Positions 15,995 through 62,457 of a stretch of 64,000 nucleotides of DNA are shown here, one piece after another. A program made the translations under genes and the position numbers. The stretch is taken from assembly GCA_943704425.1 (NCBI GenBank), contig CALSCP010001735.1, positions 62,199 to 126,198 on the forward strand, read 5' to 3'. The notes beneath the pieces were generated by a model that was not told the origin of the DNA, made no database searches, and was given only the letters and a program-made list of their open reading frames with translations. Source of the stretch: Ministeria vibrans ATCC 50519 (taxonomy: Eukaryota > Protista > Filasterea). Every line of letters begins with the position of its first letter. Within the stretch, counting starts at the first letter, position 1.

Positions 15995-16074
15995 AGCGTT
16001 TGAGAAAATTACTAATAAAAATTAATTAATAATATTATTTTTTCATTTATTCTTTTCTTTCAAGTTTCATCGGA

Positions 16075-16748
16075 ATGGCTACGCTGGGCAAACACTTGTT
16101 CGACTCGCTTCAGGGAGACTTGCGCACCCTGAGCGCCGAGAGTAAGCTCAAGAAAGCGTCGGGAAGCGAAGTCAGAGACTCCGCCGGTAAGCTGTTGATG
16201 TGTGACCTTGGATAGCTTGTCGCAATCCAGTGCCACGCGTCCACGCCCCTCCATCCTCTTGTTTTCCTTTCTGTCTCTTTCATTTGTGTCGTTTTAATTT
16301 TTGTTTCGTTGCACTTTCCCGTCAAGAAAAATCCCCTTTCTCCTTCCTCTACTGTCGTTCTCTGCGCCATAGCGCCACGCACGGGAGGCTCATCTGTTCA
16401 TTGCTAACCATCTGCCGTCCGTTGCCCTTCTCTTCTTGTGTCTTCTTGTGTCTTCTTCTGTGTTTTTGATTGTCATCTCTCGCAGAACGAGCGCTCTTGC
16501 GAGTTCTTCAAGCACGCAACGAATCCGCTCAATCTGCTGGCGCCATTTCGCACGGGGATGCTCTCTCACGCGGTGGTGATGTTCTCGAGCCGTTTCTACT
16601 GGCCTGCGACACGCGCAACGCAAAACTCGCTCAGCTTGCAGCCGAGGGTATCTACAAACTGGTGCGCCACGACTGTGTGCGCTCTCTCGAGCAAGTGGAC
16701 CGTGTCCTGGCGCGCCTCAATGTCCTTGTTGAACAGTCTCTTGAGGAG
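16075..16748 (+). CDS. MON2: MON2 N-terminal exons 1-2 (DCB domain); continues at 35051
   Basis: MATLGKHLFDSLQGDLRTLSAESK (16075-16186) and VLEPFLLACDTRNAKLAQLA...EQSLEE (16486-16748) match the MON2 N-terminus; phase-0 donor at 16749. Confidence 0.88.
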
Positions 16749-16785
16749 GTACCCGTCTCGTTGGTCGTGCACCTCAATCGCATCT

Positions 16786-16786
<1 letters not shown>

Positions 16787-16852
<66 letters not shown>
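16787..16852. repeat. (CA)n microsatellite ending at N gap 16853-16859
   Basis: Read directly from the sequence. Confidence 0.98.
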
Positions 16853-16859
16853 NNNNNNN

Positions 16860-18350
16860 ACACGCCACACTAACAAACACAAGAGCAAACAAACAAACAC
16901 AACGTGCTCAGCAGGCACTCAAAGCCACAAAGACTCATGTCAAAGCTTAAATGACTGAACCGCACCATCCAAACTCAAACTTCATCCATTGCAACCAAGA
17001 ACACCCAACCAAACGCCACCACCATCGCCTTGGCCAGCCAAAACTGCCAATACCATGCCAGCATCCACCGCCACAGACCCACCGTCCGACATTAGCAACA
17101 AACTCAGACTCTATCTGCCGCAACAGAAAATCTTCGTTTGGCCCACATCTCATACCACGTCACCATGTCTTTCACAACATTTGACGCCATCTTCTTCAGA
17201 CGAACACGCTCACTCTCACTGAAACGCTCCAGCACCGCTTGTGGCCACATTCCTGACACAAGAACCGATGGACGCATCACTTGAAACGGCACAAGCCACA
17301 GTGCAACCTGCGCGCTCGCACCATCCTGTGACGCATCCTTCAACCATTCTTGAAAGCCTGCCTGTAGTACGCCCAGGGCGCGCTCTATACCACTAACCCC
17401 AGATGCAGTGCACGCAAACATGTGGTCAACCCTAACCCTAACCCTAACCCTAACCCTAACCGAGACATGAACTTTACGATTGTATTCAGACGTTTAACAC
17501 ATACTCAAGCAGCTTATGGGGCCCACTCGGAATAACCCTAACCCTAACCCTAACCCTAACCCTAGAGACCTCAAAGGGAATCTCCATTACCCCCTCCACT
17601 GCACCATCACGCACGCTCCACCGACTGGCACCCCACGCACGATTGTGGAACACTTCGGGCACCAACATCCGTTGCTGGCGAGGCACCAGCACCCCCGCTG
17701 TGGCCATACGCCCGCTCAAATCAAACGACGCGTCCGTCACCATCAGGATCACACCGTCACCATTGTCAAACCCTAACCCTAACCCTAACCCTAAGAACGA
17801 CATCCGCGCGCTCCACTCGACGGCCCCGGCCATCGCAACCCAAGCGAATGTACACGCCACTGATTGGCGTCGACCCTAGTAAAGCACACCAGTCCCAACG
17901 CATGGCCAGGTCTGCCAATTAGTAACCCTAACCCTAACCGAGACATGAACTTTACGGTTGTATTCAGACGTTTAACAGATACTCAAGCAGCTTATGGGGT
18001 CCACTCAGAATACATCGCGATCCTCAACACACACATCAAACACAAACACACACAAGAGGATATTACAAGCAACACCAAAGAACAAATTTAATTTCAAGAC
18101 AACACACTTAATATCAAAAACAAACAATCACGAACATTAAGAGAACAACACAGTCACACACAAAGCAATTAAAAGCGCCACAATAACAAACACAAGACCA
18201 ATCAAACAAACACAACGTGCTCAGCAGGTGTCCAAAGCCACAAAGACTCAGGTCAAAGCTCAAATGACTGAACCGCACTATCCAAACTCAACCTTCATCC
18301 AATGCAACCAAGAACACCCAACCAAACGCCTCTAACCCTAACCCTAACCC
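16860..18350 (+). repeat. Subtelomeric mosaic: five short (CCCTAA)n arrays with duplicated spacer blocks
   Basis: Arrays at ~17428-17461, 17533-17564, 17769-17794, 17923-17939 and 18332-18350; ~155-bp direct repeat 16863-17017/18176-18330; ~73-bp direct repeat 17462-17534/17940-18012; strongly C/A-rich top strand. Confidence 0.92.
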
Positions 18351-18778
18351 GGTCGTATCTTGGCTCGTTAGGAATGGCTGACTGACGATAATGTTTCAGT
18401 GGTAGACGTATTTCTCTGTCGCAGGTGTTCTTCTTGCGAGGATGAGGATGAATCGGATGACTAGTTTGTCTTGTGGGACACGGAGTGTTGGCCAGCCGTT
18501 TAACAGTACTTGTTATCATGTCGTTAGTATTGTACTTACAAGAAGACACGTAATACGGGAAAGCGGAAAAGTACATATTTGACACCTTGTAACATACGAT
18601 CTTTTTTCATTTGCACGTACGTCGTTGACATCCTTACAGCGTACAAGTGACTATGTGTTTTGTTCTGGTGTGCACGAGTCAAAAGACGTCAGTCGTCATG
18701 AATCTCACACTACCCCACCACACACAATGTCTGGATCATGTCCATCTTTCTTATTGTACATATATTTTACTAAACGTT

Positions 18779-21700
18779 TCAACGGTGCTTTCTTCTCGAC
18801 CCCCAGATTGACTTGTCCTTCTTTCGTCGAAAAAAAGGGCGTCGATCAAGAAACTGCTGAGATGGACAGAAAAGGTCGCTGAGCATACCATTGCCAACGC
18901 CATCTTCTTCCTCGTCTTCTTCATCTTCATCGTCATCTTCTTCCTCGTCGTCATCCTCATCATCATCTTCCTCGTCTTCGTCTTTCTCCTCATCATCTTC
19001 TTCGCTCTCCTCCTCACTCATCGCACCATGTTCAAGCAGTCGTGCGAGACCACCAACACCAAATCGCGGAGGAAACCATACCGCTTTGTCCTCTTCCTCT
19101 TCCACCTCAACCACGCGCCGAATACGAATCGCTTTCCTGCGCTTATACTTCTCCAACAATCCATCACAGTCCGTCACGAGCTTCTCCAGCCTCCCATCAA
19201 GCGCTTCTTCCCTCTGCGTAAAGTACTTCTGCAGCGCCTTGATGTGATTGCTCGTCTCGCGCTCCTCCTCTTGCATCACGTGCTCGCCCTGTCCCGCTCG
19301 TGTTCGCGGCGCCTGTTTCTCCCGCCTCAGATATTTGACCACTCTCTGCAGTCGCTCAGTGGGTGTCAAGGGCTTCTTCTTTGGCTCACTTGTCGCTTTC
19401 TTTGTCGATGCCTTCGCTTTGGCGGGCTCTGGCACAGTCGATTTCAGTAACACGCTCGACGTGGGCTGTGTCCTGCCCATCCGCAAGAATGCAGCATGTG
19501 CCAGTGCCGCATTCTGATTGCCAAAACGTCTGTGAATCACTCCGGATGGGGACACGACAGTTGATGCAAGCGAAGAGCGCGGTACAGACTCAGTCACAAG
19601 GCGGCTTGCGTGAGGGACGGCGGGCGCTCGTGTCGCTGCTGAGGCAGCAGAGTTTGGAGGCCACGGAATAGACTGAGTGTCGAGATGACTCAGATGAGCA
19701 ACCGACGTCGGTCGTGCAGTGACTGCGGAGGAAGTAGAGGCCAACGACTGAGGGGCAGAGTGTGCTTGTGCTCGTGTAAAGTCAGAGGCGGCTGACGCAG
19801 TCGACACTGGAGGTCGCAGCGTAGACTGAATGACAAGACTCGGATGAGTGATAGATGTGGGTCGTGGGGTGGCTGCAGAGGCAGCAGTGACCGGCCATTG
19901 TGGAGCAGAGTGCGCCTGTGCTAGTGTGGAGGCAGTTGCGGCTGACGCAGCCAAGACTGGCACTACGGGCGGAGCCAGTCGGCTCGCAGGCGCAACTGTG
20001 ACCGGTCGTGTCGCAGCTGCCTTGACGCCTGTCGATGTCTTGGCGGGTTTGGACGGAGGCGTTGTGCTGGCTAAACTCGTTGTCGCTGTCACTGTCGTCA
20101 CTGGCACGGCGGCGACGCGCGCTCGTTTCGTCCGCTCCTTTTCCTTTCCCTGTCCATCGCTACTCCCAGACGGCCGTTTTTTTGTGCCCACCGTCTGCGA
20201 CACCATCACCACATCGCCATCGGCATCTTGCAAATCGTCCACCACCTCAATCACATCGTCTTCCTCAAGGTCCACCATCACAAATCGCAGTCCCCGTCCA
20301 ATGCGCCACCACACCACGCGCGGCACTCCACGCATCCCCAACACTCCCGCATAGTACGGTGTCACATCGTCCACGGTCCAACTGCAGTCGCGCAGTGCCG
20401 CTGCATTGATCACCACACGTGTCACACGGTTTGCATAGCACGCGCGGGTGCACGCCATCGTGCGGTACACACTCGCCAAATCCAGTGTGTTTACGGGTCG
20501 TAGAAACAGCGCCCACTGTGGCATGTTTGTAAGCGCGGCCATGTCCACCTGCGCCTGCGTGGGTACACGCTCGGCCAGTGACCAGTGTGTCAGATCGACA
20601 AATGGCACACCACACCGCTCGATAATCTCCACCAGCTGTGTTCGGTCCAGTGTCGCATCGGGCACACCGCTCTTGAGTGCACGCATCTCATCTGGAGACG
20701 GGGCATTTTCCATGCGCAAACCGCGTACCAGGGCGCCTCCTCGCCGCTGCAGCTTCACCTGCACAAACGCCTGGTACTTAAGCACCGCGAGTCCCGCTCG
20801 CTCGCAGTCCGCTGCAAATTTCAAATCCTCGCGAAAGGGCCACGGGCGAAACCAGACATTGCGCGCGACACACGCACTCACATGCACCAGTACAAGGCTG
20901 TACACGTAGGTGCGTCGAAAGGATGAGGTCGCCACATGATGCCCGTTCTGTCGGAAGATCCCCAACATGCCATAGCGCTCGGCCTTGCCCGCTCGCTCAG
21001 GCACAGTCATGTTGAAGGTCGACTCGTAGCGATAGGGCACATCGGGCTCCTCGCCCAGCAGCTGACGCTCCAGATGCGCAAGCACGTCAAAGAAGCTGAC
21101 AGGTTCCACAGCGAGCACAGGTGAGTGGGGTGAAATGCGGTCGCCCGTCACCGCCGCCAAATGGTCAATATTGTCGTCGCACAGAAACATCGTCTTGAGA
21201 CTAAAATAGTGCGCCACTCGCTGGCACACAAGTCGCGCATATCCAACGCCACGCGACACATCGCACAATCCCGTCTCGTGCTCAACTGTTTCCGGCAATT
21301 GCAACACAAGCGCCACATGTCCAACTCGCGCCACAAACCCCTGATACTGCTCCGCGCGCACCACCACCACCCGCACAATGGCCGTCTCGTCAACACCCAA
21401 AGCGCGACTCCAGTCGTGTCGCCCGTCCAACCGCACTGACGGTACAAACACCCACGAGCGCAACAGCCGAGAATTAGATTGTCGTCCCACACCAACGACA
21501 CGACCCTGTTCCAACTCAAACACGTCCTCAAATGCCTTCGGTATCCACAGTGGACTCTGAAATCCCTCGACCTCGAGCACCTGATGTTTCCCCTCCACTG
21601 GCCCTCGCACCACAGCGGCTGCCGTGCGAAAGCGATATAGCTCCTCCGACTCACGTACAGAGAGCTCTGTCAAGGGCACAACCTTTGGCGGGAGCGCAAC

Positions 21701-24700
21701 TGTGACATTTTGACCGGAAAATCTCTCGAGTTGCGTCGGCGAAAAGACAAAGTCGGGTGTGAATGGCTCGCTCAGAATGCCGTCGTATTTGCTTGCCGAC
21801 ACAGACCAGTCGAAGCGCTCCCGGTCAAGGACTGTGCTGGCTATTGGAAAGAACCAGTCGTCGCGCACAAATGACACACCGGGACTGAGCGTGATCCGCG
21901 GCGCAATCACAGCACATCGTTCGCACTCACGTTGGGCTGTCACACCGTCCGTCGCCGCTTCACCCTCCACCTCGCTCTTGAGCTGCACCAGTAACGACGC
22001 ATATGTGCCTGTCTTTCCAATTTGTGGCGCAGCCTGCAACACCAGTCGTCGCGTGTGCACTTCGCCCGCTGCATTCTGACCGTCGTAGCTCTTGTTACCA
22101 CGCACCGGCTCAAAGTGGCTCCACATGTGTGTGGTAGTGTCCACTCTTTGACCTGCAATGCGTGTCATGGTCGTGTCGGGACTGCTGATGATCGCCTCAA
22201 ACGACGCGGCCCTGTCGCGCTTCCTGTGACAGGGACCAAAAAGTCCATTGCCCACCAGAAGCGACGCATTGGGTGTGGACGAGGGTGCATAGCGACAGAC
22301 ACGACCGAGATCCTGAACAACTGACGAGAGCGAGCTGGGCGTAGCAGAGTAGCGCGAACGCAAGTCCATAGTGGAGAGAGACACCGGAAAGGTGTCGCCA
22401 AGACGGCCCTTTTCGACCACCAGAAGCAGTGTGGGAATGCCCTGCAGGTGCGAGTATTCGCGGATTGGCCGATGCACATGACCACAGTCGGTGCAGGTCA
22501 CATGAAAGGTCGACGGTAATTGCGGTGTGGCACACTGATCACACGTGTCGCACGCGCGTCCACACTGCAGCCGATGGTTCCAGTAGTTGCATGCCATGTT
22601 GCGCCCTTCCTCACGGCGGAACATGGTGTCCAGACTCATTCCGCCAAAGTCACATAGCAGAAGAAAGCGTCGCTGCCAGCCCACCAGATCACGAGCCTTG
22701 CGCACCATTTGCCACATTTGCTTGCCCATGGGAATGTCTTCCACGCGCACGAGGGCCATTTTTCCATGCTCAATGGTCAGATCCGCCACAACCCGCTCCG
22801 TCTCGAGTCGCGTGTCAAAGCGCCAAAAGGACTCGGTGAGTCGCGGTCTCTCACGCAGCCAGCTCCAGAGTAAGTCTATCGCGTTGGCGACAGTGTCGAA
22901 GTCCTCGAGGGCAAAGCAATGTTTGACAAGCTGCATGCGAGTCGCGTGGGAGTCGCTCTCTGCGAGGTGCGTGGCATAGTGGCGCGGAAAGAGGCGAATG
23001 AGTGAGCGAATGCTGTCTGGCACAGAGTCAACAAGTGTTGACCAAATCTTGCGCATCGCATTGTGACATCCAAACCAAAAATCACGACAATCTTGAAGAA
23101 TGGTCTGCCCAAAGGCCAATGAGAGGTCTGGGTAAAAGTCGATACGGGATTCGAGCACGGAATTGACCACGACAGAGAGAGCATAGTCACACATGTGGGC
23201 CTGCATGCTCTTGGACTTGCCTGTAGCGTGGCTGGCGAGGCGCGTGAGAAGCGGGTCGGTGCGGAAGAGACGGCGGTGGGGCTCGGGATAGCGCATGGAG
23301 TTGAGGTAGAATGTGAGCGAGCGGTAGAGGGGTGTGTTGGGCGACACGGGCGCGTCGTCAATAAAAAAGTGCTCGCTCAGACGATTGCGCGACCGATCAT
23401 GTGTGAGGTGCAGTCGAGCGGGCACAGTGTCGTCTGCAGTGACACTGAAAAACAGAGAGCCAGCACTGAGCGAGACCATGCCGTAGCCCGGCACGCGATG
23501 GACCGTAAAAAGGTGGTCGGGGCGGGCGGTCAGCGCGGCAGTGAGCTGCGAGATTCTCAGTGAGTGTGTGTCGCTGTGTGACTGGAGAACACGATCCGGA
23601 GTGCCGTTCTGGTCGCAGGCAAAGAGCATCACACGAGTATGGTCGGAACTGGCATCACTAGGGAGTGTCACAAACAGCCACGCATGTTCCCAGTCAAAGG
23701 TGCCTCCCATCGGCTCAGTCTCGTCCACACAGACGACGCTGTCGGCGCGTGGACTCACAACGAGCACAGCATCCGACTTGAAGTGGCGCAGGACAATGCG
23801 ACGAGCCACATTTCGAATGCGCTGTTGCAAGTCGGCCAGACAAGTGGTAGCGTGCAGGGTGAGCGGGTGAAAGGCCAAAAGTGAGTCGGACCAGTCCACA
23901 ATGTTGGCGGGCAAGACACGCGAGCGACAGGTCAGCACGGCGTAGGGAGTCGCCGACACGAGCAGGACAATGACGTTCTCTTGGTCCAGCAGGGAATTGA
24001 CGAAACAATGATTGGCACCTTCGTTTTTTATGCCCCAGTGACACTCGTCAGCAATGAGGACAAAGAGCGTTCGGGGCGACGCTTTTGCCTCGAGCTGTTT
24101 CATTTTGGGGTTATTGCTTGTGTCGTAGCGATGTATGATGTCGTGCGGTGTGAGGCGTGCCTTGCGCAGACGATCGTTTGTCTGCTGCTCCAACGTGAGA
24201 TAGTTGGCGGTGCCAACGCGAAAGCTGATCTTGTTGAAGCGCGCGAGGGAGCCGCCGTAGAAGCTGCGGATGCGCGTCAAAAGAACGCCCGCGAGATCGC
24301 GCTGTGCCGGAAAGATCCCCAGATGATCCGCACCGGGAGGTTCGGGGACATCAGGCAGTGGTGCAGAGTCACTTTCGTCGACATGGTCGAGGTCAATAAG
24401 GTCCAGCTCGAGCGTGTCTTGCGTAGCGCGCTTTGAAGACTCTCGAACATCGACGACGGCGCTGTCATCGGGCTCTTCGTTACCCAGCTCGATCTCACGG
24501 TAGAGAGATTCGGACACTGGGATTTTGTAGCCAATCAGAGTGCCCTCGTGGTATATGTCTGTGTCAGAACAGTTGCGGTGCAAGGGCGCTAGGTGATCGG
24601 GCGACAGCACGCAGTGATATCGCATTCCCAGTTCCAGTTTCTCCAATAAGTCGCTCAGAGTCAAAGGGACCCTCCGCAACAGGGGGAAAAGACCGCGGAC

Positions 24701-24844
24701 AACACTCTCAGCGTGTGCTTCGTCGCTGTCGTCGGCCCGGATCGGCTGAATGAGCTTGGTCAAATCAATGCCGGAAGGCGGAACAAACTCATTGAGGCTA
24801 ACCACATCGCGCATCAAGCACGCGTACAAAAGATACATGGTCAA
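18779..24844 (-). CDS. GREB1: GREB1-like protein: circularly permuted SF2 helicase plus TAGT (TET/JBP-associated) glycosyltransferase, low-complexity and acidic tail
   Basis: 2021-aa uninterrupted ORF. Helicase motifs TLFVLIADECHWG, LLVSATPY, EKGRLGDTFP..MDLR, QDLGRVCRY, then Walker A LVLQAAPQIGKTGTY downstream. GT motifs VFVPS, VVVVRAEQY, GVGYAR, LCDDNI, YGMLG, EDLKF..CERAGL..LKY..F.QVK...GG. A small upstream exon is possible. Confidence 0.82.
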   Translation of the reverse strand: MTMYLLYACLMRDVVSLNEFVPPSGIDLTKLIQPIRADDSDEAHAESVVRGLFPLLRRVPLTLSDLLEKLELGMRYHCVLSPDHLAPLHRNCSDTDIYHEGTLIGYKIPVSESLYREIELGNEEPDDSAVVDVRESSKRATQDTLELDLIDLDHVDESDSAPLPDVPEPPGADHLGIFPAQRDLAGVLLTRIRSFYGGSLARFNKISFRVGTANYLTLEQQTNDRLRKARLTPHDIIHRYDTSNNPKMKQLEAKASPRTLFVLIADECHWGIKNEGANHCFVNSLLDQENVIVLLVSATPYAVLTCRSRVLPANIVDWSDSLLAFHPLTLHATTCLADLQQRIRNVARRIVLRHFKSDAVLVVSPRADSVVCVDETEPMGGTFDWEHAWLFVTLPSDASSDHTRVMLFACDQNGTPDRVLQSHSDTHSLRISQLTAALTARPDHLFTVHRVPGYGMVSLSAGSLFFSVTADDTVPARLHLTHDRSRNRLSEHFFIDDAPVSPNTPLYRSLTFYLNSMRYPEPHRRLFRTDPLLTRLASHATGKSKSMQAHMCDYALSVVVNSVLESRIDFYPDLSLAFGQTILQDCRDFWFGCHNAMRKIWSTLVDSVPDSIRSLIRLFPRHYATHLAESDSHATRMQLVKHCFALEDFDTVANAIDLLWSWLRERPRLTESFWRFDTRLETERVVADLTIEHGKMALVRVEDIPMGKQMWQMVRKARDLVGWQRRFLLLCDFGGMSLDTMFRREEGRNMACNYWNHRLQCGRACDTCDQCATPQLPSTFHVTCTDCGHVHRPIREYSHLQGIPTLLLVVEKGRLGDTFPVSLSTMDLRSRYSATPSSLSSVVQDLGRVCRYAPSSTPNASLLVGNGLFGPCHRKRDRAASFEAIISSPDTTMTRIAGQRVDTTTHMWSHFEPVRGNKSYDGQNAAGEVHTRRLVLQAAPQIGKTGTYASLLVQLKSEVEGEAATDGVTAQRECERCAVIAPRITLSPGVSFVRDDWFFPIASTVLDRERFDWSVSASKYDGILSEPFTPDFVFSPTQLERFSGQNVTVALPPKVVPLTELSVRESEELYRFRTAAAVVRGPVEGKHQVLEVEGFQSPLWIPKAFEDVFELEQGRVVGVGRQSNSRLLRSWVFVPSVRLDGRHDWSRALGVDETAIVRVVVVRAEQYQGFVARVGHVALVLQLPETVEHETGLCDVSRGVGYARLVCQRVAHYFSLKTMFLCDDNIDHLAAVTGDRISPHSPVLAVEPVSFFDVLAHLERQLLGEEPDVPYRYESTFNMTVPERAGKAERYGMLGIFRQNGHHVATSSFRRTYVYSLVLVHVSACVARNVWFRPWPFREDLKFAADCERAGLAVLKYQAFVQVKLQRRGGALVRGLRMENAPSPDEMRALKSGVPDATLDRTQLVEIIERCGVPFVDLTHWSLAERVPTQAQVDMAALTNMPQWALFLRPVNTLDLASVYRTMACTRACYANRVTRVVINAAALRDCSWTVDDVTPYYAGVLGMRGVPRVVWWRIGRGLRFVMVDLEEDDVIEVVDDLQDADGDVVMVSQTVGTKKRPSGSSDGQGKEKERTKRARVAAVPVTTVTATTSLASTTPPSKPAKTSTGVKAAATRPVTVAPASRLAPPVVPVLAASAATASTLAQAHSAPQWPVTAASAATPRPTSITHPSLVIQSTLRPPVSTASAASDFTRAQAHSAPQSLASTSSAVTARPTSVAHLSHLDTQSIPWPPNSAASAATRAPAVPHASRLVTESVPRSSLASTVVSPSGVIHRRFGNQNAALAHAAFLRMGRTQPTSSVLLKSTVPEPAKAKASTKKATSEPKKKPLTPTERLQRVVKYLRREKQAPRTRAGQGEHVMQEEERETSNHIKALQKYFTQREEALDGRLEKLVTDCDGLLEKYKRRKAIRIRRVVEVEEEEDKAVWFPPRFGVGGLARLLEHGAMSEEESEEDDEEKDEDEEDDDEDDDEEEDDDEDEEDEEEDGVGNGMLSDLFCPSQQFLDRRPFFRRKKDKSIWGSRRKHR

Positions 24845-26016
24845 ACGTCAACAGGAGCGGTGAGCGGTAGGGGAAGAGAAGCAGAAATGAACCCAGACCA
24901 GAGAAGCGCACGGGCGAAAATAAGCAAAGGTTCGCGAATACACAAGATTCGTGCGTCCGACCAGGTCAAAGACGATACGAGTTGGTGAAGCTTGCCTGTA
25001 AACCTAAGTAGGGCAAGGAAAAAGGCGAAAGGGACTGATCTGAGGCATTTTGAGAAATGAGTAGGGGTTTAAAAGCGTCGTTGATTTTCAACGACGAAAT
25101 TTCTCTTGCGTCCCGATTTGTGGCGTCAATGTCTGGTACCAGTATGGACTCTCTGTCAGCTCTGGAAACTCGTGACTACCCGTTTGACATGCGCACTGCG
25201 GAAATTGCTGGTGAGTCTTATCCTATCTCTTCCCAAGAGCGACAACTTTTGCCAAAGTGTTTTTGGGATGACATTCACTGAGTTCTTGGCGGGGGGCGAG
25301 TCTATTGCCCATCCCGCCCTTCTTGAGAGTGACGTTGTCAAGAATGAGCAGAAGATTAGCATCTCAAGCTTTTGCAAGTAGATAGCTCGAGAGGTGTGTT
25401 GGATTTTGTATTTTATCTTGGGATTTATCTTCTTTTTAACACATCTTCTCAACACACTATAAAGGGTATCACTTAGTTCGTCAGACTAGCTAGTCACTAA
25501 GACTAAGACTAACTAAGAATTAAGATCCACAGACAGACACAGTCACAGGGGACTTTGTAGTTTGTAGTCACATATGGCCAGGGTGGCGCTGCAGAAGTGC
25601 CCCGTACCGCATTTCGTACAGGACCTTCGTAGTCAGCAAAAGGCGGCAGTCCGATCTCTTTTTTATTTTCACACACACTTTTTAGCACTTCTTCTCAAAC
25701 ACACTACAAACGGTATGCGCTCTATTGGAGTTTGTGTTAAGACGTTGCCTGGCGTCCTGCTATCATCGCGAACGACCGCCTCGCTTTTTATTGTTCTCTT
25801 CAGCCAATGAGCGCTCTTCTGCGTTTGCGACAGATTCGGTGTCATCCCCGCCCATATCGCCTTCATCGTCGTCGGTGTCGCCTCCCCTATGAGTATAGCG
25901 GATATGGTGGTGCTTGCATGCGTGGAATGTCGTCAGCGACACGCTGTTGGGGGCCGGAGGACGGGAAAAAAAAAACACATTCTTGATGCGTGTTTTTGGC
26001 ATTTCTGTAGACAATC

Positions 26017-26974
26017 ATGGGCGGCGGACTTACTCTTGGCGCAGAGATCCCTAACTTTGAAGTGGATTCGACTCAGGGACCGATGAAGTTCCACGATTAC
26101 CTCGGCAACGGCTGGGGCATTTGTAAGCGACGATCAACCCAAACAAACCGCCGCTTATCCGTTTGTTTTGTTCCATCTCAGTGTTCTCCCACCCTGCCGA
26201 CTACACCCCTGTCTGCACGACTGAACTTGGCACTGTTGCCAAGCTTGTTGCCACGGGCGAGTTTGCCAAGCGCGATTGCAAGGTGAAGGATGACGTGTTG
26301 AATATTTATGGCCTGACTCTTTTTTGTTAGGTCGCGGCACTCTCTGTCGACGATATTGAATCTCACAAGGGATGGGTCAAGGACATCGGTATGCTTCTGT
26401 TGTATCCTATCACCATCGTAACGTCATTGCGTTTTTTCAACACACAGAGGCGTCGCAGTCAACCACTGTTGCATACCCCATCATTGCTGACCCCAACCGT
26501 GAGTTGGCTGTCAAGTTTGGCATCCTCGACGCCGACGAGAAGGTATACGAATGTAGAAGAAGTGGGGAGGATCACTCAAGGAACGGAGGTTCATGTCGCG
26601 TAGGACAAGGCTGGCGTTGCCGTGACTGCACGCGCTGTGTACATCATTGGCCCGGATAAGAAGCTCAAGCTGTCCATCCTCTACCCGGCCAGTAAGGAAG
26701 AAAAGTTGAAATTTACAGAAGAAATTGACTATGTCCGTGTGTAGCGACGGGACGCAACTTCAACGAGATCCTGCGCGTGCTGGACTCTCTGCAGCTCACG
26801 GCCAACCATAAGGTGGCGACGCCCGCCAACTGGCAGCACGGCGACAAGTGCATGGTTGTGCCGTCGCTAACCGACGAGGAGGCCACCGCGCGCTTCCCCA
26901 AGGGTTTTGAGAAGGTCGCGGTGCCCTCGGGCAAATCGTACATCCGACTGACTCCCCAGCCCAACGTTGATTAA
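26017..26974 (+). CDS. PRDX6: 1-Cys peroxiredoxin, multi-exon
   Basis: MGGLTLGAEIPNF..FSHPADYTPVCTTE..YPIIAD..TARAV..LYPA|TGRNFNEILRVLDSLQLT..VATPANW..PSGKSYIRLTPQP. Confidence 0.95.
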
Positions 26975-27441
26975 ACGCGAACCGCCCTTTCATTCATTAT
27001 TGTGTGTCTGTATGGTGTGCGTGTATGAGTAAGTGAGTGTGTCATTTGTGCGTGTTTCCTATGACGGCATTCATGGCACCCCGCACATTGATGAGGCGCG
27101 ATGCAGCAAACTTGAGTGTTTTGGGGAATGCGTCAAAGAACGGGATGAACATACAGGACTGTGGGCGACAAACTGTGTCACTGTGCTTTACAACGAAAAG
27201 CAAAGCTGGAGGTGATTGGTACAATTGGATGCATTGGACGTCGAATTTGTCATCGACAGTAGTTCTACTCACTATATGAGTCTTGCCTCTTGAAGTCTAC
27301 GGCGGAAGTATTGTTTTCTTTTTATTTTGTTTCAGTCTTTTTGGATTGAGTACAGCTCTTGATTCTCGATAATAAATATTTTCTAATAATATTTTTTTTT
27401 TTGCTCACGGGAAGCTATCGTTCTCTGTGTTTGACATCGCA

Positions 27442-30400
27442 ATGGACAAAATCCGAACCCTAAAGATGAGGCATCGCGACAGCATTCGTACGCTCTTGCT
27501 CTTGTCTCTTTGACGCTTTTTTTTCGAATTATCAGCTCCACTCACTCTCTCGTGGTTTACAGCCGATGTCCAGCGAAGCATGTCCACTGTGTCTGCCGAC
27601 TCGGCCGTGTCCGACGAGACCAAGGCGTTTTTCGAGCGCTTTCACGCCGTCCGGCAGTCCGAGCCAAACTCGACCGGTTCGTCATTCCCCATTTGCCCGG
27701 CCCCTTCTCGTTTCTCCGTTGGTCAGCATTGCGCTGTGCAACAACCAGCGCTACTTCTGCGTTTCACACCAGCATTTGCACACTGACCTTGCGACACTTC
27801 GCTTTGTTTCTGTTTTTCTGTTTTTCTCCCATTCCATCAAAATACGCCGTTTAGAGGGTAATGCAACGTGGAATCGTGTGCGTAAGACAGTACAAGCCGC
27901 ACGTGAGGCTAGCTCCAAGCATGTCGCGTCCGCTGTCGTGGACCTTCTCTCGAAACGAAACGAGATGAAGGACACAAAAGCGCTATTTAACGAGACGTTT
28001 TTGCCGCCTGTCAAAGGCGACGAGGTGAGGTGGTGTTAGGGTTAGGGTTTGGCTCGTGTTGCCGTAACTATGTTCATTCTGGTTCTTTTCTTCTCATTCA
28101 TTGCAGTTTGCGACGTTGTATCGAGCACTCGTGGCGGCCGTCTTGCAGCGAGTGGGCGCTGTCAAGGAAGGGACGACGGACGCACAAGTGTTTACGTACA
28201 TGCGCGAAGTGTTCAAGATGGACAAGAGCGCACACGATGCTCTGGTCGAACAGGAGCGCCGTCACCAGCGAGAGAGTGGTGACGCCCAGCATCCCGTTCT
28301 CCATGTTGACCTAGTGTCGGCGTCGGGTGTGTACCCAAAGGACGCGACGGGCAAGAGTGATCCCTTTTGCATGCTTGGTGTCGTGCCATCTTCGTTGCCT
28401 CTTGATGACGTTGATACGAGCAACCTTGACAAGTCGTCTACTATCGATCAAAATCTCAATCCAGTCTGGAACGAGACCTTCTCTTTGTAAGTTTCATTTT
28501 TAAAGTGTGTCTGTCGAACTGTACCGCTGTGTGTTTTTGTTGTCGTTGACTCTCACTCACTAATTGTGTGTGCGTGTGTATGTGTGTGTGTGTGTTTTTT
28601 TTCTTTACCTTTTCTTTCATCTCCATAGTTCGCTACCTGAAGACCCAGCTGGTCTCTCGCTATTTCTTGAAATGTGGGACGAGGACGAGGAGAGTGTTGC
28701 AAGTCTGTTTCTTCACAACAAACTCTTCAAGAAGTTCCATAAGAAGAGTGTGTACGTGCTCAAGCGTACCAGCAACTACGCTCATGACCTTTTTTGTGGT
28801 GTGTTTGCGTGTGTAGAACGGACAACACGCAGTTTCTTGGTCGAGTGGTTGTGCCCTTGTCAGAGATTACTACAGATGGCATTGCTCGTGAATTTGAGTT
28901 GCAAAAGCGTTCTCGAAAGTCTCACGTGAGCGGCACGGTCTTTCTCAAAATTCGCTTTGTTTACGAACGCGTACGATGCTTATTGTTTTTACATCATTTG
29001 ATGATTGTTCTTTTTCCCTTTTTATATTTTTGTCACCTTTGTAGATGACCGACGTGGAACGCTTGAACAAGGCTGTGTCGTCGACGACGGGGTCTGTCAC
29101 TGATACATCCCAATTGTTCGAGTATATTGTCGGTGGTGAGTCACACGACGTGGCTTCCTCTATCGCTTCATGACTTTTTTGTCTTCCTTTTTGTCTTCCT
29201 TATTACAGAGATTGTTGCACACGACAGCGTTGCCTACATCGACCCAGAGTGCACACGAGTATGGGATGGTCAGCTGTCAGCTCCTGCACGCTTTCTTCTG
29301 CGCATGTTTGCCCTCCTCAACAATGTGTCCCCTTCGACGCAAGCAACAGCGCTCCTGCGTCATCGTGTGCGCTTTCTCACCCGCTTCCCTCTTGCACTTG
29401 ACCTTCACTCGGCTCTCGACTCCTCCGAGGACGGCATCAATGCCATTCGTACGTCTGCATTGACCGTCGCGGGCCAGACCATCTTTCACTCTACGTTGAG
29501 TGTGCTCCGCGTCACGCTCCTTGAAATCCTACGCCAATACAAGCTTTTCTATCCGTCGAGCGACAGTCTTGGTCAACAGCGATTTAGCGACTTGGTTGGC
29601 CTTCTCATCACTCTCGACGCTGTGCCTATTATGCGCAAAGCTCGTGGTCGTCTGCGTGATGTTGAGTCCACCTCTACTCTGGTCGAAGATGTTCGATTGG
29701 CCCTCTTGGTATGCCTAGCATGATTCCTTTCTCGCTTTGACCTTCTTGATTCTCTTTTTTTTTTCTGTTTTTGTATTCGTGTTTTGTCTCTAGACTTGTG
29801 CAGGCAACACTTATCGTCTCATGTCGGCCGAATGTGAGCGCGACACTCCCGACCGCACCGACGCGACGGTAGCCAAACTCTCCCGCCTGGCCTCGCGCAT
29901 TGCCAAGGAGCTCAAGATCACACACACGGTCTACTCCAAGGCCTTCCTTCAGTACGTCATTAATAACAAAAATAATAATAATACTACAATAAGGCGTGCT
30001 GTAATAATAATATAATAATAAGAATAATAATATCATTAATATTATTAGAGTAATAATAATCATTAATTTGTTTTTACTTCCTTCCCTCCTCTATCAAGGC
30101 TCCCTGGTGTGGACGTGTTTGCTCTTGAGGCTGTCTGCTTCTCGAACCCACTGCTTGACGAAGTGGTCAATTTGACAGAGCAGAAAAAGAGGAGTGCGGT
30201 GGATCCTACGTTGATGACGCTTTACCATACGCTGCGTGAACTTGACCGCGATGTGTGGTCTCTCATGTCTCCTGTGTACTCACAAACTTGCATGCATCCC
30301 TGAAAATATACTTATTTTTATTTTTATCTCGTTTTCTTTTTTCAGATCTCGAAAGGAGATCGTGCGTTCCGAAAGCTACTCGGAGAGGTTTAGTCCGTTT

Positions 30401-31987
30401 GTCATGGACTTTTTGACGGCAAGTGCTAGCAAGACAGAGGAGTGGATTCGTCGTGCCATTGCTGAAGACAAAGTACATCTCTGCTCCTTTGTCTGTTGCA
30501 AACATTGCACTTTCTCATGAATAATTTATAATTTAATTATTTCTTATTGTTATCAATGCTTCTTTATGATAGGTTGTCCGTGTTGGTCAGGAGCTGCACT
30601 CATCGAGTGTTATCGACATGTTCACCGCCTTTCATCAGGTAATCTCACTGTTTCTCCCGGTCTTTTAGCTTTGTACTGCTTCTGTTTTGCTTCTGCTTTG
30701 CCTCTGCTTTGCTTCTATTCGTCTATTTTATCACTCATCATGTTTTTAGACGTACACTGTGCTGAACAACCTTGACTGGCCTGAGCCCATGATGAAGCAC
30801 ATTTTCTTTGTAACTTTCACTCAGGTACGTGTGAACTTTCTGTGAATTAGGGTCAAATACAAGTCTTACTCTCATACACTGCTTTGCTCGTCTGGCGCAG
30901 ATCGTTACGACGGGTGTGAGCATGTATGGCGAAACAATCAAAGAGACCCTCAATGCGAAAGGGTTCTACGACACGGAGGGACAGTTTGACGTCACCGAAG
31001 AGGTAACCTTTCAGTATCAGTGCTTCGAAATTATTAAACGCGCTCGTTCTCTTTCTTTTACAGTTGTGTGTGACGCTGAACAATCTTGAGACGGCCCGGA
31101 GTCATTTGGTAGAACTCTTTGATCAAGTTGATGGGGTTGCACAAGTGGAAACGGTATATAATATACATTAAGGCGTATGTTTTCCCTTCTAAAAATTTTG
31201 CCCATGTGAACTCTTGATCAGGTTCGCAAATTACCAGAGTTTGCCCACTACGAGTCACCCATGCCATTGCTCCTTGACGAAACGTACGAGTCACTGCGAA
31301 TGATTCTCGATCAACTTGTCGAGGTCGTCGTCAAAAAGGTACCAACGAGCAAGAGCAATGTTTGATTTTTCTTTTTAGTTGTCTTCGTTTGGTGACTTTT
31401 ATGTTAATTTTATGGGTGTTATTCTTCTTTTCTTTCTCTGTTCCGTCTTAAAAATTAATTGGAAGCGTCTTCTTCTTTAATGGATATTTCTCTTTGTAAT
31501 GTTGCTTTTGGTTGGTTTTTAGATGTCCCCTGACATTACAGGATATCTGCGTGCGGCAATCACGGGCGATGTGGAGGACGATGGGGCATCATCTTCCTCG
31601 TCGTCGCTTCTGCACTCGCTCTTTACCGTGCGCTCGCGCGGCCATCGTCTGCGTACTGCGACCATGAGCTCTGATGACATACACGCTCTTATCCAGCCGC
31701 TCCTTGACTATCTCGACAGCAACCTGAGCACACTCAGCGAGAATTTTTTCCCAAACATCTTCCAGGCGATTTTGAGCGAGTTGTGGACAGGGGTTCTTGA
31801 GAGCATGCATACACTGCTGCTGCCCCCCTGTGGAGGCGGGGACACCGAATCACCATTTCCCGCCGAGGCTGCACTTGCTGGCACTGCCCTCAAGGTAATA
31901 ATCGTAAAAAGAATATGTCACAAACAAAGACGGAACAAAATAAATTAAGTAGTTATTATTATTATTTGTTGTTGTTGGTGGTGGTGG

Positions 31988-32031
<44 letters not shown>

Positions 32032-33171
32032 GTTTGTTTGTTTATTTTTGTCATCATCATTAATTTGTATTATTGTCGTTTTATGACCTTTTTTAGTATT
32101 CTCTACTTCAGATTTTGTATCAGTTCTTTTACTTTGTTTATTTTTGTAATCATCATTTTGTATTATTGTCGTTTTATGACCTTTTTTTCTTTTACTATGT
32201 TTATTTTTGTAATCATCATTAATTTTGTATTATTGTCGTTTTATGACCTTTTTTTGTTATTTTCGACTTCAGATTTTGTATCAGTTCTTTTACGCGGATG
32301 GCGATGGAATGAAAAATGCAAAGTTGGAAACGGAACTGTACGCGAGCGTGTGTCACTTGGTGGAGCTGTACGCGGTCAAAACACCCGCTCTGGTGGAAAT
32401 GTACTGGAAGGAGAAGAATCGTGTGCGCAACGACGAGAGTGACGCGACGTCCAAGTTGGGCGAGAGGAGCGACGCGGGGTTGGGCACGCTGGTGGTGGGC
32501 ACTCGTTTGGCACCCATGAAGGAGCGTGCGCGCATTATCGTGCACCTTTTCAGTGCCCACGATCTGCCTGTCATGGACAGCAATGGCCTTTGCGATCCCT
32601 ACGTCATCGTCAGTCTATTACCATCAGAGCTCATCAAGTGTGATCAGAAGAAATCCAAAGTTGTCAAGAAGACGCTCACTCCCACCTTCGACCAAAGTCT
32701 TGAATTGTATGTTGTTTTTCAGTTTCCGAGCCCAATTTGACCATCATGACGTTTGTCTAATTGGTGTGTTTTTGTAGTGTTGTGCCAATTGTCCACGCAC
32801 ATAAGGTTGTTGTCCATTTGGAGATGTACGATTACGATCTGTTCAGTGGCGATGATTTTATCGGTACGAATCAGTTGTGGAGGGACAACATCCTTTGTTG
32901 TGATGAAACATTGTTTGTGTTGTTTTTTTTTTCTTCTTTCTTTTCTTTCCTTTTATTCTTCTTTTAAACATGTTCAGGAGAGGCAATCGTACCGGCTACG
33001 CTGACGCCGAGCAAAGAAGAGAAGCTTAAGCCAGTGTCGGTGTTCTTAGCACCAAGCCAACGTGACAACGAGAGCAAAGAGGCTTCGACTCTGTTTGGGC
33101 TGTTGAAGCAGCGCAGTGACGCCGGAGACGAGTCGGCAGCTGCCTTTGTCAAGACGGCCACACGACACTGA
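27442..33171 (+). CDS. UNC13D: Munc13-4/BAIAP3-like vesicle-priming protein (C2-MUN-C2), many exons
   Basis: N-terminal C2 (KDATGKSDPFC..NLNPVWNETF..EMWDED..FLGRV); MHD motifs (HSSSVIDMF, LCVTLNNL, IQPLLDYLDSNL..L.ELW); C-terminal C2 (AHDLPVMDSNGLCDPYV..KKTLTPTFD..MYDYDLFSGDDFIG). Confidence 0.85.
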
Positions 33172-33307
33172 ACCAGTGCGACCCTAAAGTTTTTTTTTGT
33201 ATCTTGATACAGTTGTTCAGACACCCTCTTTTTTTGTCTTTTAGAGCCTGTCCGTCGAGTCGAAAAAGAATTGAAAATTATGTTTTTTTTTTTTGTATTT
33301 ACGCATC

Positions 33308-33652
33308 TCACTTGTTCACTTTCCTCTACAAATAAGAAGAATAACGAGTCAATTAACCAATTTAATATCAACACAACCAAAAAAATTGAACAAGTGTGCA
33401 GTACAACCACGACACGTTTAGCAACTCATTTCTTGTTTGCTGTACCTGGAGATTGGACACCATGTCGATATAGGAGACGGCCGTGTCAGAGCGGTCATCC
33501 TGCAACATCTGCAAGAAGTGCATTCGCATGCGCTGGTTGTCTTCACGGATCACATACAAAATCGGATAAAGACTGGACCGCGCGCGAATCGCTTCAATGC
33601 ACGCACGCACTCGAACATTTACTGGGCTCTGATCCAATGTCGGAAGAGCATC
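33308..33652 (-). CDS. SEC24: SEC24 last two exons, displaced 3' end of the gene at 41826-45677
   Basis: Exon 33652-33446 DALPTLDQSPVNVRVRACIEAIR..LYVIRED..FLQMLQDDRSDTAVSYIDMVSNLQ plus exon 33325-33308 RKVNK*, matching the Sec24A/B C-terminus. Confidence 0.85.
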
Positions 33653-33655
33653 CTA

Positions 33656-33668
<13 letters not shown>

Positions 33669-33701
<33 letters not shown>
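33669..33701. repeat. Poly-A tract at the SEC24 break, partner of the poly-A at 41758-41783
   Basis: Read directly from the sequence. Confidence 0.9.
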
Positions 33702-33703
<2 letters not shown>

Positions 33704-34233
33704 GGGTTCTTGGACGAACTGTGCTTTGTTCGCAGTCATGGCGGAAGTATTGCATGCTTGAGAGGATGCGTTGGCGGTGGGGGTTGACCCGGCGCGTTGC
33801 TTTTATGGCAGAGTCAGAGAAGAAGACAGAGAGAGAGAAAAAAAAAAAGAAGAAAAAAAAAACGAGCCATCAACAATTGCAAAATTGAGACTCCCTGCTT
33901 GACTTGTGGGGACGCAAGTGATGCACGGCACGCCGCTGGTGTGTGAGTGTCCCGCTTGTACTTTGTGATGACGGTGTCGCCCGATACGGTTGCGATGTCG
34001 GACGGGATTTTCCGAGTTTCATCCCAGGTCGCTCGCGTTGAGCCCATTCGTATCGGAGAATCGGGTGTGCTTTTCCCGGGAATGTGTGTGGTGTAGGACA
34101 TTAATTGCATGTGGTGACAGAGGAACGGTGGGGCCTCTCTGTATTTATGAGTCTGACTGGGTCGCATTACTTACTTGTCAAGTTTCCTACTGCATCTCAT
34201 GAAATAAATAATATCATACAATATTCTCTTTAG

Positions 34234-34777
34234 TCGTTTCTTGGCCTGGGCAACACCGCCACGATTGACGTGGATTTGGACAATGCGGACCAGCACAAGA
34301 TGGTGGACATTCGAAACCCTTTGTTGGGACGCAAAGAGAAACTTCCTTTGTACTTGGACGGTGACACAGTGAGCGGCACGGTACGAAAGAAAGAGTATCG
34401 CGTGGAGGACGAGCGAGTTTACGTCATACACACTCACACACCCATACTGCCCCTCCTGTTGATTTTTTCAGGTTGATCTGCGGTTGCGGAATCCCGGAAA
34501 GCCTCTGGAGCACCAAGGCATCACAGTCGAGTTTATCGGTCACATTGAGGTACACCAAATGCCCTCCTTCTTCAACAGTAACCGATACAATTTCTTTATT
34601 TGTATGGCGCGTTGCATTTTAGTTGTTTTACGATCGAGGGAACCACAGCGAGTTTACGTCGCTGATCAAGGAACTTGCGCCTCCGGGCGCACTCATGCGC
34701 AACCAGTCATTTCCCTTCAAGTTTGAGAATGTCGAGAAGCCGCACGAGTCATACAACGGAATCAACGTCCGTCTGCG
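34234..34777 (+). CDS. VPS26: Retromer subunit VPS26, 5' part only, breaks at a (CA)n intron
   Basis: SFLGLG..LYLDGDTVSGT|VDLRLRNPGKPLEHQGITVEFIGHIE|LFYDRGNHSEFTSLIKELAPPG..FENVEKPHESYNGINVRLR. No downstream exons in the window; start exon not located. Confidence 0.9.
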
Positions 34778-34781
34778 GTAC

Positions 34782-34782
<1 letters not shown>

Positions 34783-34860
<78 letters not shown>

Positions 34861-34866
34861 ACACAC

Positions 34867-34868
<2 letters not shown>
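34783..34868. repeat. (CA)n microsatellite at the VPS26/MON2 junction
   Basis: Read directly from the sequence. Confidence 0.97.
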
Positions 34869-34901
<33 letters not shown>

Positions 34902-35050
34902 ATTATAATATTAATATAATTATAATCATTATAATTATTTTATTATTATAGTTATTATTTTATTATTATCATAATAATATTATTATAATTATTATTATAA
35001 TTATCTTGATTCTCTATTAATTATTTTTCTTATCTCTTTTCTACCTCTAG

Positions 35051-60121: not shown

Positions 60122-61192
60122 ATGTCGCAGGCATCGATGGAGAACCCAATAGACCGCATTCAGTGCCTGATACAGGCCACGTCGCAAGATATCATTCGCG
60201 ATCTTCAAAGCGACTCAATGGGCGGCGAGCTGCTCGACGGCAGCCTGCGCATGACGGACACCCAGCAACAGTGCACGCCGACCACGGCGGCGGCCAATGC
60301 GGTGGGAGTCCTCGCACAGCCCATGGAAGTGCCTCAAAACGACAGTGGCGCCGAAGACCACCAACATTTTGCAATAGGCGACGGCGACGAGACCGACGAG
60401 ATCGACGGGGCTGTGCGACGAGGAGCCGGGCGTCCCCGGTCGAAGCGCATGTCCGAAAAGCGAAAGTACGCGGCAGCGATGGGTAACGGTCACGAACGAA
60501 ACGGAGACCACATCGACCTTGACGACGACGACGACGACGACGACGATGATGAGGAGGATGACGAGGACGATGATGACGATGAAGACGGTGGCGGGGGTGG
60601 GTACAATCGTCGTGGCAACGGCGCTCAGAAGGGACGCTCTCGACGACGCCGTCAACGACCGGTCGATATGGACGAGGACGATGAGGGAGCAATGAGTGAT
60701 GAGGTCAAGTTGTTTTTGCCGTCGGCCAAACGCAAGCGCAACACCAAGAAGCGCAAGGTCTCCGGTGGTGCAGGTGGTGCTGCAGAGTCCTCTTCGCCGC
60801 CCACGTTCCGACCGCCGGGACTTTCGCGAGGAGGGCATCGTGGAAGCAGTGTGAGCAGCGGCCGCTCGAGATCCTCCGCCGCCGCTGGTGGTGGTGGGGT
60901 GTTTTCGCCGTCCCTTCCCGAACACGATACTCTGGCAGCGCACAGCGCTCGTCCCCAGCCTAGCGGACCGTTCAATTTCTCTGTGGAGTTGCCTCGTGAC
61001 AAGACTCTGGGCGTGTCCGATCGCTCTAAGGCCTGGATTTACTCATCAACCTACAACAGGTATGAATCATATTATTAATAACAAAAAAATCAACAGAATG
61101 ATAAGAAAATAAAGAGATTGTGGAGCTGTACAAATTTATCATATTATTACTATTATTATTATTATTATTATTATATTATTATTATTATTATT

Positions 61193-61268
<76 letters not shown>

Positions 61269-62457
61269 TTGTTGTTGTTTTTGTTGTTGTTCCTGTTGTT
61301 TTTTGTTTTTATTGTTCATTATTAATTTTTTTTATTGTTCATCTTTCTTCTTTGTCAACTGTTGCAGATTATTTGTGAGACCGCAAAAACCAATCACAGT
61401 CATCTTTGCGGTGCGACGACGACTTCCTCCGGGCTCGACAGCACGCGTGCGCATGGTCGCGCGCTTTGAGGCACCCGAACGCCGACACACACCTATTGTG
61501 CGCTGTCCCCTCCACTTGGTACCCACTCAGTCTGCCGCGCCAGCATTGCCTGGCGCCAAGCCGGTCGAGTCGCCGTCGGCGTCTCCCATCAAACCGACAC
61601 GTCGTCAGGCGGCTGTCGCTGCCGCTGCAGCCGAAGCTGCTGCAGCCGCTGCAAAAGCCGCTCCTTCTTCTACCGCCTCCTCCTCTTCGTCGCACAGCGG
61701 CGCTCGCCGCAACCTGGACATATCATCGCGTCAACGCATGGACATCAGCTCATCTGGTGGTGGCGGCGGTGGTGGTGGTGGTGATAATGGTCCAACAGAC
61801 AGATTACTGATGCTTGCGCGCACAGCGAGCATGGCCGACGAAGACAAAATCAGCTTGCCCGACAATGACACACCCGTCGCACCAACGTCGCTCGAAGGTC
61901 GTCGCTTCATGGGCTCGTCCCTTCCGCCCCGCACTCAGTTTTTGCTGGTGCAAAATGACCGTGCCATGTACGAAGCGGTCGACGGTCACGAGACAGTCAC
62001 TGTGCCACTGGTGCGTGCCGATGTCAGCTCGGGTACTACCCAGTTTGAAGTGCTCTCCATGGGCTGCTTCACGTCGTGCAAGTCCATCGACAAGCACGGA
62101 ATTGAGTTGCACTTTTCCCTCGAAATCGATGGTGTTGTAAAGGGCACCTACACCATTGGCGTGCGTGTATGTGCATGTCCTATTCGGTAAAAAGAAAAAG
62201 AACCAACAATTATTATGAATTAAAACATTTTATTGTATTTTTTTTTTTTTTTTTTCCCTTTTAGTGACCATCGACAAGTGGAACAACCGTCGACAAAAAA
62301 GTCACGCAAAAAGTCGGATTTGGCAGCGGCAGCAGAAGCGGCAACGAACAACGGTTGGGAGCAGCAGCACCAGCAACAAACGTCACACCTGAACGGACGT
62401 CTGGCGCAGACACATCAATTGCAAGAACAGGGGGCCTACTATCAGCCTCAACTGCAT

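Follow-up and report, generated by a model that had tools for sequence, protein, structure and literature searches.

A single-copy, transcribed GREB1-family gene beside telomere-type repeats in the filasterean Ministeria vibrans

The DNA considered here, called the window, is a stretch of 64,000 nucleotides (nts) from Ministeria vibrans ATCC 50519 (GenBank assembly GCA_943704425.1, contig CALSCP010001735.1, positions 62,199 to 126,198 of the forward strand), and positions are given as those of the window unless a scaffold is named. Its minus strand carries a long, single-copy gene whose product belongs to the GREB1 family, in which a circularly permuted SF2 NTPase module precedes a glycosyltransferase domain of the TET-associated glycosyltransferase (TAGT) clade. 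Transcription of the gene is directed toward short arrays of the telomere-type repeat CCCTAA, and a preliminary description had seen here a candidate telomeric DNA-modification system or, alternatively, an element resembling the yeast Y′ elements. The structure of the gene, its transcript, its product and its surroundings are set out below, and the bearing of each on the nature of the acceptor and on the significance of the neighbouring repeats is then considered.

The gene and its transcript

The interval 18779-24844 is a single open reading frame (ORF) on the minus strand, 2021 codons long when counted from a TTG. With its first ATG at 24838, the coding sequence (18779..24838) specifies 2019 amino acids (aa) before a TGA stop codon at 18781-18779; residue numbers are counted from the TTG at 24844, which makes the Met residue 3. 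The leader, of about 150 nts, has no upstream ATG.

Contigs and reads of four public sequencing runs, one of which (X6) is of RNA, were mapped onto 16001-22000. From 18730 onward an RNA contig of 6291 nts runs colinearly with the genome and shows no joint; before that position it ends in 24 non-templated T residues where the genome is not T-rich. These residues represent the poly(A) tail of an mRNA from the minus strand, with its poly(A) site at 18730 and a 3′ untranslated region of 49 nts. As the contig is colinear, jointless and ends in poly(A), the 6-kb ORF is expressed from one unspliced, polyadenylated transcript (18730..24996, minus strand). The 5′ end of this mRNA would be near 24996, judging from the size of the contig, the mapped part of which extends to 22000.

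The claim of a 6-kb intron-free ORF is borne out by these data, and so is that of transcription toward CCCTAA arrays ending around 430 nts beyond the stop codon: the last array ends 429 nts from the stop codon and 380 nts from the poly(A) site. The setting in an intron-dense genome holds in that neighbouring genes are spliced. The RNA contig of MON2 skips a 299-nt GT..AG intron at 16185-16485, and Vps26 is split into exons of around 60 codons each. However, exons of 1068 and 1116 codons occur nearby, with exons of more than 1000 codons in MON2 and in Sec24, and a long uninterrupted frame is unexceptional here. Retroposition as the source of the intron-free gene is ruled out, both by the lack of a genomic A-run at the poly(A) site and by the long open frames of all three paralogues.

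The permuted SF2 module and its inserts

The protein matches the Pfam profile cpSF2-GREB1 (PF20692) with an E value of 4.7e-65 (a score of 221 bits, where the cut-off is 26.2), and its nearest ESM-Atlas cluster is GREB1 (score 0.94). The GREB1 family is large, a profile search against 1.84 billion representatives giving 786 relatives at E ≤1e-3; a word-indexed homologue search gave three only. The NTPase module extends over 21845..24316 (minus strand; aa 177 to around 1000), and its motifs come in the permuted order II, III, V, VI, I, as read after aligning the protein with its two paralogues and with three relatives from databases. Motif II is DECH (24038..24049, aa 266-269), and a weak ResIII-type Pfam match spans it. 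It is followed by SATP (motif III) at aa 297, EKGRLGDTFP (motif V) near 815, QDLGRVCRY (motif VI) at 844 and APQIGKTGT at 940. The last of these holds the Walker A sequence PQIGKTG (22007..22027, aa 940-946), the permutation having put the P-loop C-terminal to motifs II-VI. No variation is seen in motif III (ATP), motif V (G.TFP), motif VI (Q..G) or the P-loop (Q.GKT) when 37 long homologues are aligned with the protein, GKT being present in all 38 sequences; DExH is at least 90% conserved. With every ATPase motif retained, the NTPase looks competent.

Two inserts interrupt the module. An AlphaFold2 (AF2) model of aa 170-1000 (pLDDT 77.8, pTM 0.83) has a β-trefoil of ricin-B/MIR-like type at aa 319-502 (23339..23890, minus strand), and matches to this insert filled the lists from both Foldseek and VIA searches of the PDB with the model. 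β-trefoils were matched at E 3e-5 by Foldseek; by VIA an HA33-type lectin was matched with Z 15.7 (root-mean-square deviation 2.4 for 135 aligned residues) and the MIR domain of Pmt4 with Z 13.3. Polypeptide GalNAc-transferases carry a ricin-B lectin domain. The predicted resemblance to the lectin and MIR modules of glycan-handling proteins may be taken as a weak pointer to glycan or protein acceptors. The other insert is a Cys/His cluster before motif V (22472..22591, minus strand; aa 752-791), seen in the translation and partly conserved in homologues, which is a probable zinc-binding element.

Beyond the glycosyltransferase domain there is a disordered, low-complexity tail of around 490 aa (18782..20257, minus strand; aa 1530-2021), rich in Ser, Thr, Ala and Pro, with basic clusters and a terminal acidic tract. 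Tandem repeats are present at 18901-19003, and for aa 1530-2021 Pfam gave nothing but spurious low-complexity matches. [In an algal-culture metagenome, run X10, contigs break with loose ends at 18976 and 19082, in the acidic-repeat region (18900-19100), and the word depth of the gene is around half that of MON2; length polymorphism or strain variation could account for this.]

The glycosyltransferase domain

The GT-A domain of the TAGT clade (Pfam PF20691) occupies 20756..21388 on the minus strand (aa 1153-1363), inside the interval of around 20730-21460 where, C-terminal to SF2 motifs, the preliminary description had placed it. The whole protein matches the TAGT profile at E 5.7e-4, and 62 of 63 aligned homologues match it also; a paralogue on scaffold C1367 that is 42% identical does so with 42.9 bits. 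Sequence searches of the PDB with the whole protein and with the TAGT-domain profile found nothing meaningful. More was learnt from an AF2 model of aa 1090-1490 (mean pLDDT 79.8, with the core above 90). Against the PDB it matched only generic GT-A folds, at E ~1e-5 by Foldseek and with Z ~14 by VIA to LH3, RmlT, TarP and GnT-I. In a library of viral structures its top matches are phage TAGTs, with E values from 9e-13 to 1e-9, and the phage structures matched include a T-even-type hydroxymethylcytosine (HMC) glucosyltransferase.

The sequences GVGYAR (aa 1199), LCDD (1221) and EDLKF (1339), all singled out earlier, are present and sit on invariant or near-invariant columns of the family alignment. 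The strongly conserved residues are all retained, residue 1321 apart (see below): G1201, R1204, Q1208, D1223, D1224, N1225, E1339, D1340 and K1356. The DxD-type motif is DDN (21170..21178, minus strand; aa 1223-1225), with D1223 invariant and D1224 conserved in 98% of 63 sequences. The strength of the cpSF2-GREB1 match and the phage TAGT matches of the modelled domain, the best at E 9e-13, uphold the assignment of the protein to the GREB1-family fusion of a permuted SF2 module with a TAGT domain.

Copy number and paralogues

Three cpSF2-GREB1 loci and one stand-alone TAGT ORF are present in the assembly, which comprises 29.7 Mb in 2860 scaffolds. The paralogue on C1367 has its 42% protein identity over 1651 aa, and that on C556 has 32-36%, in blocks. 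As DNA, the gene has one genomic match of 100% and otherwise only patches of 67-73% within the paralogues. The word depth of contigs from the gene matches that of the single-copy MON2 flank (126.8 and 115.3, respectively, in run X1; 220.1 and 211.9 in run X3), and the repeats to the left of the gene have word depths of 4,000-70,000. The genome has a single copy of the gene, along with two old paralogues. The whole of scaffold C1367, and the 34 kb of C556 around the paralogue, are free of CCCTAA dimers and of the repeated element described below.

The stand-alone ORF, at C312:14329-15690 on the minus strand, has 454 codons. No other TAGT match in the genome is as strong (49.5 bits), and the ORF counts as a fourth TAGT gene, without a helicase fusion.

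The telomere-type arrays and the retroelement stack

Five short CCCTAA arrays lie to the left of the gene, reading on the plus strand, at 17428-17461, 17533-17564, 17769-17794, 17924-17941 and 18333-18350. A 15-mer search for the repeat gave 13 matches, with 0 in shuffled sequence. Each array has only 2.5-6 units, with repeat fragments in between, and together they do not make up a terminal array. What appeared to be a telomere is a stack of retroelement fragments. Window 16860..18330 consists of out-of-order pieces of a multi-copy element associated with telomere repeats, the sense strand of which appears to be the minus strand. At least 40 copies of its 77-nt unit and at least 35 of a 558-nt piece occur in the genome, and the word depth of the fragments is 100-300 times that of unique DNA.

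One end of the element is constant, with the 77-nt unit joined to CCCTAACC, and the junction with the telomere tract is fixed, CCCTAACC being directly followed by GAGACATG; the opposite end varies. By comparison with scaffold C1583, which begins with at least 11 CCCTAA units, the canonical order is telomere tract, 77-nt unit, around 165 nts, and then the 558-nt piece. In the window the pieces are truncated and out of order, with a telomere tract bounding each; their order is different again in a 2.6-kb RNA contig that holds three of them. A longer copy (C2679:3-1604, minus strand), which could be of use in delimiting the full-length element, has an ORF of 534 codons with a weak match to RVT_1 (E 2.4e-4), and two ORFs of around 400 aa from longer copies had no Pfam match.

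TRAS/SART of Bombyx and Zepp of Chlorella are non-LTR retrotransposons specific for telomere repeats. The element resembles them in having one constant end at a fixed point of the telomere repeat with variable truncation opposite, and in its stacked copies with short telomere tracts between them, enriched at chromosome or scaffold ends. It differs from them in that the match to reverse transcriptase is weak, no endonuclease domain is identified and no full-length copy is defined. The stack would fit insertion of a retroelement into telomere repeats, the sense strand being directed toward the chromosome end.

Contigs from three independent DNA data sets (from 2011, 2022 and a metagenome of 2024) cross from the gene over the tract at 18333-18350 and into the repeat, and the junction is therefore real. 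[The first ~120 nts to the right of the last tract, 18353-18474, are 87% identical to C1494:1202-1317, near the left end of that scaffold, and may be another shared subtelomeric piece.]

A chimeric scaffold

An 18-kb block of the window, 16860..34782, is mis-scaffolded into an intron of MON2, which makes scaffold C1735 chimeric. In addition to the element stack and the GREB1-like gene, the block has three genes of ordinary kinds: one for a peroxiredoxin, one that is C2/Munc13-like, and Vps26, of which the 5′ half is present. At its left edge is a scaffold gap of 7 N (16853..16859), directly after (AC)33 at 16787-16852, and its right junction is an (AC)n tract at 34783-34869. The DCB domain of MON2 is split between 16482-16757 (profile positions 32-117) and 35039-35242 (112-177), and an RNA contig runs from ~16750 directly into letters found at ~35051. 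Vps26 is divided in a similar way, profile positions 2-127 being just left of 34783 and 121-269 opening scaffold C238 (1-700); there is no second copy of Vps26 in the genome. From the two split genes it follows that the block belongs next to C238 and was inserted through collapse of (AC)n tracts. In contigs from each of the four runs, 18164 is linked to 16863 by 12 additional letters, and the gap of N therefore cuts through a copy of the element; at its left edge the block stops with the end of a contig, within the element stack. The practical outcome for the genome is a correction to the assembly, in which the 18-kb block is wrongly placed in the MON2 intron.

[Within the block, 26017-26660 (plus strand) has a 1-Cys-peroxiredoxin-like gene and 28100-32740 (plus strand) a gene with introns for a C2-domain protein, Munc13/BAIAP3-like; both were named by eye, from ORF translations only.]

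The acceptor and the significance of the neighbouring repeats

The protein has four parts: a permuted SF2 NTPase; the β-trefoil and Cys-cluster inserts; a TAGT-clade GT-A domain with intact DxD and ED; and the disordered tail. The NTPase module would bind, or travel along, nucleic acid or nucleoprotein and in so doing would position the glycosyltransferase domain, which would move a sugar from a UDP-sugar to an acceptor via its DxD-metal site. Human GREB1, the sole GREB1 enzyme to have been assayed, O-GlcNAcylates a protein, ER-alpha (PMC7968844). The acceptor here is more likely a protein, as with human GREB1, than a DNA base, because no enzyme of TET/JBP type was found that could make hydroxymethyl-pyrimidines. 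A six-frame scan of the assembly, by a method that does detect a C5-methyltransferase and the four TAGT loci, gave no Tet_JBP candidate, although in an assembly of so many scaffolds a split or unassembled gene could be missed. Several TAGT genes with no TET/JBP found argues that TAGT enzymes are uncoupled from hydroxymethyl-pyrimidines in this organism. The reading that is favoured, with a fair though limited degree of confidence, is of a single-copy, transcribed, intron-free GREB1-family gene for which protein is a likelier acceptor than a DNA base and for which closeness to telomere-type repeats is incidental. The adjacency to the retroelement stack in particular is best read as incidental.

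Several features pull the other way. Characterised TAGT enzymes outside the GREB1 family modify DNA. For an intact NTPase of translocase type, nucleic acid would be a better-suited substrate than a soluble protein, the basic clusters of the tail would agree with import into the nucleus, and telomere-type repeats are indeed 380-430 nts from the gene. The TAGT domain taken alone scores 26 bits, just under the cut-off of 27.5, and reaches 28 with the neighbouring stretches in frame; residue 1321 is His where 97% of homologues have Asn. With this score and His1321, glycosyltransferase activity could be altered. Furthermore, the helicase of human GREB1 is described as catalytically inactive (PMC7968844), and the biochemistry of the human protein may therefore not transfer to this one.

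The main alternative with regard to the acceptor is a translocase-coupled DNA-base glycosyltransferase, the SF2 module tracking DNA, telomeric or other, and the TAGT domain glycosylating a modified pyrimidine as JGT does in the formation of base J. It is favoured by the predicted structure of the glycosyltransferase domain, closest to phage TAGTs and with the T-even-type HMC glucosyltransferase among its matches, by ATPase motifs that are intact family-wide and the ResIII-type match over motif II, by the basic clusters, and by the repeats that adjoin the gene. Yet no Tet_JBP domain was found in the assembly while TAGT genes number at least four, the two paralogues lie away from telomere repeats, the one assayed GREB1 enzyme glycosylates protein (PMC7968844), the β-trefoil insert points to glycan or protein rather than DNA binding, and no modified base is known here. 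On this balance it is unlikely. Nothing here ties the protein functionally to telomeres or to DNA-base modification, the telomere link being positional only; the earlier proposal of a telomeric DNA-modification system has no support beyond that position, and the first enzyme of the base-J-like pathway it invoked was not found. A related reading is rated very unlikely: an ATP-driven fusion of SF2 translocase and TAGT domain that would glycosylate DNA or chromatin at or near chromosome ends, with a source of hydroxymethyl-pyrimidines other than TET/JBP. If it were true, the ancestral role of GREB1 would have been nucleic-acid modification, later redirected to proteins in animals. Least probable, and close to refuted, is a subtelomeric helicase element similar to Y′ or to fungal TLH (telomere-linked RecQ helicase), the gene being part of a repeated unit that spreads among chromosome ends. 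Points in its favour are the length, lack of introns and helicase type of the ORF, its transcription in the direction of the telomere-type repeats, and the adjacent repeats, which are multi-copy and enriched at scaffold ends. However, the gene has its single 100% match and the word depth of its single-copy flank, the helicase is not of RecQ or Y′-Help1 type, and the scaffolds of the old paralogues lack the element.

Whether the locus is at a chromosome end at all is a separate issue. The strand of the CCCTAA repeats and the side on which they lie are consistent with a left chromosome end. Of the 32 placed copies of the 77-nt unit, 17 are no more than 2.5 kb from a scaffold end, and every one of these points outward. 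Stacked multi-array clusters like this one are seen at termini of scaffolds C1583, C473 and C2371, which end there in longer CCCTAA runs. The gene is 429 nts from short arrays in a stack of this kind, typical of scaffold ends, and beyond 16860 there is a gap in a chimeric scaffold. The competing possibility is of an interstitial repeat cluster, with the gene away from any chromosome end and the adjacency due to the place where a retroelement inserted or to the scar of an old healing or fusion event. In its favour, at least eight element fragments of 80-700 bp, some with short CCCTAA tracts, are more than 4 kb from scaffold ends with no N run nearby, one being at 123 kb in a 171-kb scaffold, and the gap hides what lies to the left of 16860. 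The outward-pointing terminal copies, the comparable stacks at the three scaffold termini, the fit of strand and side, and the left edge of the block being a contig end inside the element all count against it, and it is a real possibility but not the expected one. The GREB1-like locus is probably subtelomeric, in an assembly that is chimeric at this point, and the block is probably a chromosome-end piece continuing into C238. That a terminal telomere array follows the stack is judged reasonably likely.

Relation to known systems

The GREB1 family is already known, and the gene is a further member of it. GREB1-like proteins have been listed in choanoflagellates, ichthyosporeans and other protists (Shin et al. 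2021, PMC7968844). The order of permuted SF2 module followed by TAGT-type GT-A domain is common to the present protein, animal GREB1/GREB1L and the protist GREB1-like proteins (PMC7968844; PF20692 and PF20691). Like GREB1, the protein is around 2000 aa in total and retains the glycosyltransferase residues GxGxAR, DD and ED. Unlike animal GREB1, it has no match to GREB1_N, GREB1_2nd or GREB1_C in Pfam at E values up to 1. Atlas clusters of animal GREB1 do carry these domains, and homologue representatives of around 1950 aa are without them. The β-trefoil insert and the long disordered tail also set it apart from animal GREB1. A further difference is from human GREB1 with its inactive helicase (PMC7968844): Walker A, DExH and motifs III and VI are kept here and in the aligned homologues.

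With JGT of kinetoplastids and the phage TAGTs the protein has the GT-A/TAGT clade in common, the phage enzymes being the best structural matches. In contrast to the GREB1-like protein they are not fused to an SF2 module, and they act downstream of a TET/JBP dioxygenase, of which none was found in this genome. Likeness to yeast Y′ and fungal TLH extends to a helicase-type ORF adjoining telomere-type repeats; Y′ and TLH have helicases of other families and occur as multi-copy families at many chromosome ends, whereas the gene here is single copy with paralogues that are not telomere-linked.

The organism

The source of the DNA had been taken to be a unicellular relative of animals, and genes elsewhere in the window agree with this. 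Its Sec24 is closest to animal Sec24A, at 54-55%, with 51% to that of Capsaspora. The organism is not Capsaspora, and exact look-ups of three proteins of the window gave no match in the collections searched. [A p53 DNA-binding domain (Pfam P53, E 1.1e-19) is encoded by an ORF at 61120-62187 (plus strand), in agreement with a holozoan origin. DNA of the window also occurs in seawater and algal-culture metagenomes, which points to a marine protist.]

Significance for the GREB1 family

GREB1 is medically studied and its biochemistry is poorly understood. A transcribed protist homologue that has all the ATPase motifs would be a clean model in which to address both the role of the helicase-like module and whether the ancestral acceptor was protein or nucleic acid.

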